This document shows positions 24,168 to 26,735 of a stretch of DNA of 64,000 nucleotides, piece after piece. A model generated the notes under the pieces. It saw nothing but the letters and a program-made list of their open reading frames with translations. It did no database searches and was not told the DNA's origin. The stretch lies in sequence record KT895374.1, one strand, 5' to 3'. The position numbers and the translations under genes are program-made. How positions within the stretch are numbered: position 1 is the stretch's first letter; each line of letters begins with the position of its first letter.

Positions 24168-25106
24168 CTATTTAAAAAATTTTAGCCTAAACCTAGTCTT
24201 AGGATGAATTGATGATTGATCTAGAGGATCAGATTTCAATACTAAAACTTTAGAATTTTTTACATGTTGTTCTGTAAAATTAGCTGGTAATAAATCATTT
24301 GTGGTATAAGGTATGAATCCCCTATTAGGTTGCTTCTCACTATATCTCATAGCTTCAGAATCTAAAGATGAAACCTTGTTGAAATCCATTAGAATAGCAG
24401 GATCTAAATCTTCTTTATACGAATAAGCGTATTCTACAGTAAGTTCTGCAATATCATGACTACTATGGTTTCCTACTAATTGACTATATGGTACTGAAAT
24501 AGGATAAGCGCCTGTATATTTGGCATAGTATAATATAGTTTCCCCATCCATATCCAATTCAAAATAATATATGGAACTGACAAAATCTAGATACCTTTTG
24601 GTAATAGCATCTTCTGAAGCTGTAAAGTATCCTCTACGGACATGCTCTGTATATTCAACCCAAATTTTATGAAGTTTTACAATAGGCAAATGTTTATATT
24701 CCTCAAATGCTATCGTAACAGTATCACCCTGAAGACTATCAATAATAGATATTGGTAATGTCTGTTTGTTACCATAAAATGTTTCATTGACATCAATTGT
24801 TCTTGCCGCCAAATCTTTTCCGTCCATATCTTTAAATGAGTTAGTTAAGATTTTAATAAATGGACTAATCCCAGAGCCTAATGTTGTTAAACTTTTAAAT
24901 ATCTCAGGTTCTTTATTCTTCATATAAATCAAGAAGTTATCACGATTAACATTACTATCAATTAAGTTTAACTTAGGAGTTGTAATAAATATAAAAGGTA
25001 TGCCTTTTATATAGACATCATGATCTTGTACATTTCTCTTTTTAAAAACATCATATTCCTTTGTAATATCAATATGCTGATTTATAGTAAATGAATTGCT
25101 TGCCAA
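24168..25106 (-). CDS. Virion structural protein (tail-tube-like fold)
   Basis: YYAKYTGAYPISVPY...LTVEYAY pattern; late motif at 25132-25143. Confidence 0.55.
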   Translation of the reverse strand: MASNSFTINQHIDITKEYDVFKKRNVQDHDVYIKGIPFIFITTPKLNLIDSNVNRDNFLIYMKNKEPEIFKSLTTLGSGISPFIKILTNSFKDMDGKDLAARTIDVNETFYGNKQTLPISIIDSLQGDTVTIAFEEYKHLPIVKLHKIWVEYTEHVRRGYFTASEDAITKRYLDFVSSIYYFELDMDGETILYYAKYTGAYPISVPYSQLVGNHSSHDIAELTVEYAYSYKEDLDPAILMDFNKVSSLDSEAMRYSEKQPNRGFIPYTTNDLLPANFTEQHVKNSKVLVLKSDPLDQSSIHPKTRFRLKFFK

Positions 25107-25184
25107 TTAAATCACCACTTCTTTTAATTTATAATCTATTGTTTTACTTATAAAATTAACTCTTTTTTTAAATACATATTATAG

Positions 25185-25425
25185 AAATGTCGAAATAGTT
25201 TAAATAGCTAGTATATAGGACCTTTAATAAACAATATATTAGAGACTGTAACCGCCTTAAATGGTCTCTGACTATTCGACATTTAAAATGGAGGAGTTTG
25301 AACCTTGTTTAAGTTAGTTCGTATAATTGTAAGTCTAATTAACGGTTAGGAATATGAATTTTAAAACTGGGTGCTATATACTTAACGTCATTAGTAATTA
25401 ATTTTGCTAATGACAAGGCGGTTTA
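25185..25425 (+). ncRNA. Candidate highly structured, pseudoknotted ncRNA
   Basis: Five complementary blocks including two long-range pairings (see findings); locally GC-enriched; no credible ORF. Confidence 0.6.
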
Positions 25426-25436
25426 TTTTTTTTCTT

Positions 25437-25448
25437 AACATATCATTA
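25437..25448 (+). promoter_or_regulatory. Late-type promoter of the head-protein cluster
   Basis: AACA TATCAT TA. Confidence 0.6.
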
Positions 25449-25487
25449 AACTTAATCTAAGAATAAGAATGAGAGGGATTTGATATA

Positions 25488-26735
25488 ATGGATATTCAAG
25501 CTTTAACTAGTTTTATTTCAGCATTTGGAATTAAAGCTGGAAAAGACAATGACGGTGAAAAAATTTTAGGTTCTTTTTTAATGAATAGAGCTTCTTCAAG
25601 AACTGGCAGTATTAAATTTAGATCTAGAGATTTAATTGCCCAATATCCTGTTCTTGCTTCTGATAATATTAGTGCAAAAACATTACAGATTTTAAATAAA
25701 GGATTAGAAGTGGAATATGTAAACTTGCTTAGACTACTCATCCAAAATGATGGAGCTACTAATTTCTCTAATACTGGAGAATACTTATCAAGATTCCATC
25801 AAAATATTTCTAATCGTGTAGGATCAACAGATGAAGATAGAAAAGATTCCAATAATTATGAAAAAATGGTAAAAGAAGATGTTCAAATTGAATCAAAAAT
25901 TCATAGTATTTCAAATAGAGAATTACTAGAAAACTTTAATGAAAATTTAAATTTTCAATCTCTAAATGAGCTAACTATTAGTAGGGCACATCAGCAAGTA
26001 GTAGTCAATGAAGCAAAGAAAGATGAAAAACCTAAAAAATTTGATGATGAACCAAAAGTAAAATCCAATATTACATCATCTGAAGTTAAAAAAGCAAATG
26101 AGTTATCCCCTACAAATATTACCGTTACAATTGACTATAAAATTGATGGTGGTAGCAAATCAAAAGATATTATCTTTGGTGTAAAATGTGTAACTCATTT
26201 AATTGAATCTGCGGATGTAGAATACTATCTTCCTAATGCAGTAGTAAACAAAACACCTGTTATGAGATTTATTCAATGGACTAGTGGAGAAATTAAATTC
26301 TTTAGCGATCTCTTATTCTCTATTGATGAAATTAAGAAAACAGCTATCAAATCAAATAGTAAAGGTAATTTCTGGTGGAGAAAACTTCAGACATTATCTA
26401 AAATCTCTAAACATCGTTCTAGCTTACTTGGATTAGCTAAAGGTAAAAATATTAAACGACCTATCCCTACATCTACAATGATTATTAGTAAAGAAAATGT
26501 AGACAATATTAAATATAAACATGGTATTGATATTTTAGAGAAACCAAGTTTTGCGGCTAAAATCATTGATAACTTTTTCTTAATGAATTTCATTATTGTT
26601 GATGAGTCTATTGAAACAGTATATATGTATAATGACGAAACTAAGGATTTTTCAATTCTTTCTTTCAGAAGTTTTGAAAATTTCTCTAAGCAAAAAAATA
26701 TTGATATTAAAGACATCTATAGTCTTTTGAAATAA
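25488..26735 (+). CDS. Putative virion (head) structural protein
   Basis: 415 aa, late promoter, gene context; no catalytic motif. Confidence 0.55.
   Translation: MDIQALTSFISAFGIKAGKDNDGEKILGSFLMNRASSRTGSIKFRSRDLIAQYPVLASDNISAKTLQILNKGLEVEYVNLLRLLIQNDGATNFSNTGEYLSRFHQNISNRVGSTDEDRKDSNNYEKMVKEDVQIESKIHSISNRELLENFNENLNFQSLNELTISRAHQQVVVNEAKKDEKPKKFDDEPKVKSNITSSEVKKANELSPTNITVTIDYKIDGGSKSKDIIFGVKCVTHLIESADVEYYLPNAVVNKTPVMRFIQWTSGEIKFFSDLLFSIDEIKKTAIKSNSKGNFWWRKLQTLSKISKHRSSLLGLAKGKNIKRPIPTSTMIISKENVDNIKYKHGIDILEKPSFAAKIIDNFFLMNFIIVDESIETVYMYNDETKDFSILSFRSFENFSKQKNIDIKDIYSLLK

Follow-up and report, generated by a model that had tools for sequence, protein, structure and literature searches.

Phages of the AR9/PBS1 type are the model system in which uracil-DNA genomes and a pair of phage-encoded multisubunit RNA polymerases are studied, yet none of their genomes has an annotated gene for a small RNA or a micropeptide. 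A relative of these uracil-DNA jumbo phages, Bacillus phage vB_BpuM-BpSp (KT895374, 255.6 kb, genus Takahashivirus; BpSp below), contains a 381-nt gap between the divergent genes gp269 and gp270. This gap occupies positions 25107 to 25487 of the window, i.e., of the whole 64,000-nt stretch of DNA that was analyzed, which shows 100% identity to BpSp. It carries no annotated feature in the BpSp, PBS1, and Goe21 records, and an early promoter is its sole annotation in the AR9 record. A first-pass annotation of the window had proposed that the gap encodes a functional structured noncoding RNA with several pseudoknots. Is there a discrete RNA at this locus, does it fold as proposed, and is it noncoding?

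Results

Homologues of the locus among jumbo phages

The features of the locus are listed in Table 1. Products of gp270 to gp272 fall into virion structural PHROGs. The gap had been described as lying upstream of a head-gene cluster, which does not hold, as its neighbors are virion structural proteins of unknown role, one of them tail-tube-like. The description of the gap as locally GC-richer is right relative to its promoter part (0.29 in the RNA part versus 0.22) but not relative to the flanking genes. At the start of the window, three tandem group I introns (Rfam RF00028, 66 to 77 bits) occupy about 1 kb of the minus strand (1-274, 327-582, and 773-1030), and the exons between them must therefore be very short.

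Table 1. Features of the gp269-gp270 intergenic locus of BpSp (window coordinates)
Feature	Position	Strand	Remarks
gp269	24168-25106	-	Virion structural protein; tail-tube-like, Pfam PF23971 match
gp269 late-promoter motif AACA-N6-TA	25132-25143	-	Motif match; points away from the RNA
Early (virion RNA polymerase) promoter AAATACATATTAT	25170-25182	+	6-nt spacer, then predicted +1 at G25189
RNA gene	25189-25433	+	About 245 nt, from predicted start to end of U-tract; covariance model score on the BpSp RNA, 157.9 bits
Helix a, 5' arm	25189-25199	+	Starts at +1; pairs with 25271-25280; 6 of 10 pairs covary; z = -6.7
Helix d, 5' arm	25210-25222	+	In the bulge between a and b; long-range pairing with 25370-25382, crossing a and c
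Conserved unpaired A-rich motif CCUUUAAUAAA	25221-25231	+	Consensus CCWURAUAAA; near-invariant alignment columns
Helix b, 5' arm	25241-25246	+	Purine-rich; pairs with 25264-25269
Helix c, 5' arm	25250-25258	+	In the loop of b; pairs with 25415-25423 (pseudoknot), 9 bp, exact
Helix b, 3' arm	25264-25269	+	Always pyrimidine-rich in homologues; possible anti-SD
Helix a, 3' arm	25271-25280	+	As for the 5' arm of a
Shine-Dalgarno (SD) site GGAGGA	25290-25295	+	Missed by the first-pass annotation
Small ORF	25305-25349	+	TTG start, 14 codons plus TAG; peptide MFKLVRIIVSLING; like ORF in 15 of 15 loci
Helix d, 3' arm	25370-25382	+	As for the 5' arm of d
Hairpin e	25387-25414	+	11 bp (25387-25397 with 25404-25414); conserved loop UU-N3-U
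Helix c, 3' arm	25415-25423	+	Adjoins hairpin e; 2 nt before the U-tract
U-tract	25426-25433	+	Presumed 3' end/terminator; run of at least 6 U in 15 of 15 loci
gp270 late-promoter motif AACATATCATTA	25437-25448	+	+1 is A25448; homologous AR9 g214 late site mapped
gp270	25488-26735	+	Virion structural protein

When the gap was searched against phage records with blastn and megablast, BpSp alone was matched. Since the gap DNA is too diverged for blastn, homologues were sought through the flanking proteins. With tblastn, the two genes were found in the same divergent arrangement in AR9, PBS1, Goe21, and Internexus, where the gap measures 423 nt, and a protein search with gp269 identified relatives at 50 to 77% identity, all of whose contigs carry the gene pair, with 373 to 522 nt between the two genes. 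The gap sequence is identical in AR9 and Internexus, and PBS1 and Goe21 score identically; these four phages were counted as one, which gave 15 loci in total (homologous loci are labeled by L numbers below). L030 matches the covariance model of the RNA in two pieces, with all helices present plus an insertion, and the model yielded no significant match in Listeria phage LPJP1, L006 to L010, and L017. Further scans added no member: neither the IMG/VR proteins searched with gp270 nor the proteins of genome contigs contained a match, and the ca. 240 matches of exact DNA patterns in viral and genome collections were all judged by alignment and nhmmer to be chance, except for AR9's own contig.

Equivalent slots were also inspected in more distant phages. 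In Listeria phage LPJP1 (L003, 1840-2350), the homologous gene pair flanks an early-like promoter, about 460 nt of unannotated DNA, a 12-nt U-run, and a late-like motif, and the covariance model and a scan for small SD-led ORFs gave, respectively, no match and no clear candidate. In Staphylococcus phage MarsHill (L035, 1847-3300), an early-like promoter, AAATTTATATTAT, is followed by small hydrophilic genes of 42, 158, and 52 aa; to judge from this phage, early genes seem to be accommodated generally in the space between these two late genes.

ARAGORN detected no tRNA or tmRNA in the gap, and no family of Rfam 15 matched it at gathering thresholds, with tRNA, tmRNA, 6S, RNase P, riboswitches, group I and II introns, and pRNA included in the comparison. 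The best sub-threshold match (20 bits versus a threshold of 50; E = 0.23) links positions 25340 to 25413 on the plus strand to the model of flavivirus exonuclease-resistant RNA. We noted it as the fold may protect against 5'-3' exonuclease, and it is probably a chance match. Permissive Rfam searching thus agreed with the initial impression that the RNA is not a recognized tRNA, tmRNA, RNase P, 6S RNA, or riboswitch. No description of the RNA was found in the literature searched. As far as seen, the RNA family is new and restricted to AR9-like Bacillus jumbo phages.

An early promoter and a transcript presumably ending at a U-tract

For AR9, the consensus sequences are AAATATATATTAT-N6-G for early promoters, in which G is +1, and AACA-N6-T(A/G) for late promoters (Lavysh et al. 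2017, PMC5312081). The BpSp promoter (25170 to 25189) shows one mismatch to the early consensus and matches exactly the pattern AAATAYATATTAT-N6-G, which occurs 8 times in the window versus 0.9 expected. The early motif with G at +1 was present at 15 of 15 loci, and the homologous AR9 start site (181724) had been mapped by dRNA-seq with a TEX enrichment of 3.87, the highest among the early start sites. These data indicated that the early-like promoter noticed before helix a is genuine. The other seven matches to the early pattern (1365, 10041, 38905 on the minus strand, 44571, 53545 on the minus strand, 54930, and 63233) probably mark further early transcription units in this region of the genome.

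Two further promoter candidates were evaluated. The first-pass annotation had placed a late promoter at 25230-25241 and had suggested two isoforms. The string AACAATATATTA is indeed present there, but AACA-N6-TR is no commoner in the window than expected (96 occurrences versus 111 ± 10), the motif is absent at that place in AR9, whose late start-site table holds no entry for it, and just three other loci contain it, at other positions; the internal promoter, and with it the two-isoform idea, was therefore rejected. A sigma-A-like match (TTGAAC-18-TATAAT, 10 of 12) lies on the plus strand at 25298-25327 of the window, inside the small ORF, and such matches are as numerous in the region as expected from shuffled sequence. 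Transcription in AR9 is reportedly performed by viral polymerases only.

How far the early transcript extends bears on the nature of the RNA. The distance from the early start to the U-run is 244 to 265 nt in 13 loci and 333 and 370 nt in the two others. The AR9 study treats the RNA as a long 5' UTR, filing start site 181724 in its Table S2 as "g214, UTR 340" (PMC5312081), and the RNA lies on the same strand as, and directly upstream of, gp270, the counterpart of g214; it might accordingly be read as a long regulatory leader (riboswitch or attenuator) of gp270/g214. However, the expression of g214 amounted to 0.69, 20.7, and 1427 at 5, 20, and 40 min, the first of these values despite the early promoter, and g214 possesses its own mapped late start site (182012), after the U-tract and 53 nt 5' of the ATG. 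Moreover, AACAAATAATTA follows the U-tract in 12 of 15 loci, with the variant AACA-N6-TA in BpSp and L030 and no such motif in L028. In the latter, a metagenomic locus, a 154-aa gene with its own early-promoter motif separates the U-tract of the RNA from the gp270 homologue (1641-2172). A leader function is thus extremely improbable. With g214 silent at 5 min and started later from a site of its own, the early transcript probably stops short of g214 and constitutes a separate early RNA. From the AR9 data we infer that the RNA is a separate early gene that ends before the downstream gene, with its 3' end presumed at the U-tract.

Apart from 181724, the AR9 dRNA-seq tables list in this gap only late sites, namely, 182012 and the minus-strand site 181669 of g213, which is homologous to the gp269 site. 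Elsewhere in AR9 (KU878088), the early starts of g044, g226, g248, and g270 are followed by long "UTRs" of 200, 214, 191, and 161 nt, which could hide small genes or RNAs.

Five helices maintained by compensatory changes

All five pairings of the first-pass annotation (helices a to d and hairpin e) and the U-rich end were found at their positions in the BpSp sequence. Two of the helices required adjustment. Helix a had been drawn as 25185-25199 with 25271-25284 (10 bp, a bulged A, and 4 bp), and because G25189 is the predicted start, its first 4 nt fall upstream of +1. Helix d, given as 25210-25218 with 25374-25382, can be extended to 13-nt arms. The plus strand folds better than its shuffles (z = -2.73, versus -1.39 for the minus strand), and the structure was assigned to plus-strand RNA because it contains many G-U pairs.

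To see whether the pairings are retained in syntenic regions, as had been suggested at the outset, 13 RNAs were aligned. In a plain MAFFT alignment, 81% of the cells were paired versus 36 to 47% for slid controls, and 26 of 48 pairs had changed on both sides. The RNAs were then realigned by a covariance model to which helices a, b, and e only had been given, leaving c and d unfitted. With the full pseudoknotted structure, 88.6% of the cells were paired (39 to 41% when slid), 29 of 47 pairs were double-changed (8 to 11 when slid), and 75 cells had changed on both sides (11 to 18 when slid); none of 500 shuffles was as good. An alignment-free test, in which each RNA's own 3' arm was compared with the arms of its homologues, gave z values from -4.8 to about -8.7 for helices a to e.

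Hairpin e was 99.3% paired, with 8 of 11 pairs covarying (z = -8.7). In the alignment that had not been fitted to them, helix d was 93.5% paired with 7 of 12 pairs covarying (z = -7.2), and helix c was 94% paired with 4 of 8 pairs covarying (z = -4.8). Helix b is poorly aligned by column, and its own arms scored -138 kcal/mol versus -61 ± 9 for crossed arms (z about -8.5). Such covariation among homologues places the helices far beyond chance; they have been kept by compensatory changes in 13 to 14 syntenic homologues.

Helices a, c, and d mutually cross. Since the bulge between a and b contains the 5' arm of d, and the loop of b that of c, the three can in principle coexist, i.e., form together rather than alternate. 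A scan for canonical hairpin-plus-U terminators found none; hairpin e ends 11 nt before the U-run, and because the sole helix adjoining the run is the long-range helix c (spacer of 2 to 8 nt across homologues), helix c is the presumed terminator stem.

In addition to the A-rich motif that follows the 5' arm of helix d, the e-loop (UU-N3-U) and a UAAC linker are near-invariant and unpaired. These motifs, together with five helices, three of them mutually crossing, that persisted while the flanking proteins fell to 50 to 77% identity, go beyond what end protection needs and suggest that some factor recognizes the RNA. They would suit a dual-function RNA, the pseudoknotted scaffold of which is itself a trans-acting RNA or the partner in an RNP (e.g., with a phage or host protein) and for which any encoded peptide is a separate second product. 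Against this, a possible kissing interaction of the A-rich motif with the e-loop proved weak and inconsistent and was rejected, and one locus that lacks the fold argues in the same direction, as described below. We regard the dual-function reading as possible but doubtful.

A conserved ORF of 14 to 19 codons

The gap had been called ORF-free, which is correct for ORFs of at least 30 aa; however, a conserved 14-codon ORF with an SD site is found at 25290-25349. An SD sequence (GGAGG, GGGGG, or GGAGA) precedes an ATG or TTG start by 7 to 11 nt at all 15 loci. The ORF comprises 14 to 19 codons (14 or 15 in 13 of the loci) and begins at +111 to +129. The AR9 peptide is MFKALRTVLSIIGLQ, and further homologues read MKKLLEAIIIALSLR, MKKLALVVLQILSLR, and MRKLIKTFLLLLSY. 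The peptides share a cationic N terminus (M-K/R-K), a hydrophobic body, and a variable C terminus; they are hydrophobic overall (GRAVY, 0.84 to 1.51), with a net charge of 0 to +3, mostly +2 or +3. A peptide of 14 to 15 aa is too short for a membrane-spanning helix.

Changes between close pairs are mostly synonymous, with pS/pN values of 0.84/0.07, 1.04/0.15, and 0.68/0.17, and codon position 2 is the most conserved (diversity of 0.62, 0.41, and 0.63 over positions 1 to 3). Of the other two frames, one is interrupted by stops in 13 and the second in 9 of the 14 sequences. The conserved ribosome-binding site, start, and frame and the synonymous excess point to an ORF that is protein-coding and under purifying selection. 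We also considered a second ORF that would begin at the conserved CAUGA downstream of the stop codon but rejected it, since inspection by eye showed a 1-nt indel at this point between the close relatives L021 and L022.

These results bear directly on the view that the RNA is a purely noncoding structured RNA (a ribozyme, a packaging RNA, or an RNA polymerase regulator) in which the small ORF is incidental. Strong covariation, early expression, and the lack of a match to known families are what such an RNA would show, although no observation specifically favors any of these three functions. Yet an SD with a start codon at 15 of 15 loci, a nearly fixed ORF length, the pS/pN values and the stops in the other frames, and an ORF region devoid of conserved pairing of its own all speak against the purely noncoding reading and render it very unlikely. 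Of the original proposal, a discrete, pseudoknotted RNA on the plus strand is upheld by covariation and by the AR9 start site, and its noncoding nature is contradicted by the SD and ORF conserved at 15 of 15 loci. To judge by sequence conservation, the RNA is an mRNA for a predicted micropeptide, whatever else it does.

In L017 (1572-1941, minus strand), a divergent syntenic locus, the early promoter, the SD, a related 19-codon ORF, and a local hairpin-plus-U terminator are kept, and helices a to e are absent. Because the ORF is retained here without the fold, the peptide outlives the fold, which suggests that the peptide is the core function; it is also an argument against a dual-function RNA.

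Relation of the fold to the translation start

The SD and the ORF occupy a stretch of about 90 nt between the 3' arms of helices a and d, and this stretch itself shows no conserved pairing. Seven of the 14 homologues (L020, L021, L022, L023, L029, L031, and L032) have an SD/start region complementary to the stretch just past the stop codon. This additional helix, designated f, reaches 18 bp in L031 and buries the SD and the start codon; it passed the swap test at z = -2.9 (P = 0.003). Helix f is absent in BpSp and AR9, and gating of translation is therefore not universal. The 3' arm of helix b could act as an anti-SD, and RNAalifold picked its pairing with the SD; this pairing was, however, not separable from base composition, and it was not significant in the swap test (P = 0.15).

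A buried start codon is also a feature of type I toxin-antitoxin systems, in which a locked toxin mRNA is neutralized by an antisense RNA. In the hok and aapA1 toxin mRNAs, a hydrophobic peptide, 5'-3' pairing, and a buried start occur together. The phage RNA resembles these in its small, hydrophobic, cationic peptide of 14 to 19 aa (by analogy a candidate toxin), in the long-distance pairing between 5' and 3' parts (helices c and d), and in the burial of SD and start by helix f in half of the homologues. However, the AR9 dRNA-seq Tables S2 and S3 (one data set) contain no antisense start site in the gap, the minus strand of the gap carries no early-promoter motif, helix f is missing in BpSp and AR9, and the gene, flanked by late structural genes, belongs to a lytic/pseudolysogenic jumbo phage. 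As these data reveal no antisense RNA, the RNA does not qualify as a member of this class, and a type I system is most improbable.

Discussion

On balance, the locus probably, though far from certainly, encodes an early micro-mRNA whose 5' and 3' ends are clamped and which possibly has a dual function, its scaffold serving in termination, in end protection, and, in some lineages, in occlusion of the start. The main rival to such a clamped micro-mRNA is the dual-function RNA; a purely noncoding RNA, a type I system, and a gp270 leader are less likely. In the clamped micro-mRNA, transcription by the injected virion RNA polymerase would start at G25189 and stop at the U-tract near 25433, yielding an RNA of about 245 nt. 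Helix a, formed from +1 and stacked on hairpin b, would make up a 5' domain, and a 3' domain consisting of the 3' arm of d, hairpin e, and the 3' arm of c would clamp it twice, through d at the a-b bulge and through c at the loop of b. Helix c, beside the U-tract, may act as the terminator stem, and the paired ends may shield the RNA from Bacillus RNases. The loop of about 90 nt between a and d carries the strong SD and the 14-codon ORF for a cationic hydrophobic micropeptide, with the scaffold presumably gating translation; in 7 of 14 homologues, helix f buries the SD and the start codon. The peptide may act on the host membrane early in infection, and the predicted outcome is the controlled early synthesis of a membrane-active micropeptide.

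The scaffold may have a role of its own besides. A stabilizer or terminator would need neither so complex a fold nor the conserved unpaired motifs at 25221-25231 and in the e-loop, which together hint at a further function. A more elaborate proposal, which we consider rather unlikely, is a bifunctional early effector, in which the clamped pseudoknot would be a trans-acting RNA or RNP (directed, e.g., at a switch between the two viral RNA polymerases or at a host factor) and the 14- to 15-aa peptide, with its lineage-specific C terminus, would be a signal or membrane effector governing superinfection or the PBS1-type carrier state.

Whatever the scaffold does, the locus represents a missed gene with unusually strong comparative support, and the evidence for its start site has already been published under another label. 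It offers a tractable phage micro-mRNA whose ends are tied by pseudoknots and possibly a natural terminator signal for the virion RNA polymerase, and its peptide is among the shortest conserved phage-encoded ones in this analysis. Other long "5' UTRs" in the start-site maps of jumbo phages may likewise conceal genes.

Among known systems, the RNA appears by analogy to work most like locked type I toxin mRNAs and peptide-encoding small RNAs. With the former (hok of plasmid R1 and aapA1 of Helicobacter, and Ibs as regards size), it shares a transcript of about 200 to 400 nt with a very short hydrophobic ORF; in mRNAs of the hok/aapA1 type, too, a 5' element pairs with the extreme 3' end and the translation start is buried in some members. 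It differs from them in having no antisense partner found, in its shorter peptide (14 to 15 aa), in an SD that is free in BpSp and AR9, in being an early gene of a virulent/pseudolysogenic jumbo phage, and in showing no sequence or Rfam similarity. Bacillus subtilis SR1/SR1P and Staphylococcus aureus RNAIII/delta-haemolysin are likewise discrete structured transcripts with their own promoter and terminator and a small ORF, whereas the phage RNA encodes a much shorter peptide and has a pseudoknotted fold that ties its two ends together.

The peptide itself recalls the SHP/ComS pheromone precursors of Firmicutes in its 14 to 19 aa, cationic N terminus, hydrophobic body, and variable C terminus. 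No Rgg/ComR/RRNPP receptor gene is found next to the RNA, where the neighbors gp269 (PF23971) and gp270 to gp272 encode virion proteins. The prohead pRNA of the phi29 family is another structured early RNA of Bacillus phages with conserved loops. Unlike pRNA, which has an Rfam family, is noncoding, and lies at the genome end, the RNA described here has no Rfam match and encodes a peptide, and intermolecular complementarity between loops is not established for it. Finally, the 5' stabilizer stem-loops and SD-type stabilizers of Bacillus mRNAs resemble the phage RNA, which has a helix from +1 onward and, close to its 5' end, a strong SD; in contrast to these simple elements, the phage RNA combines five covarying helices with three crossing interactions.
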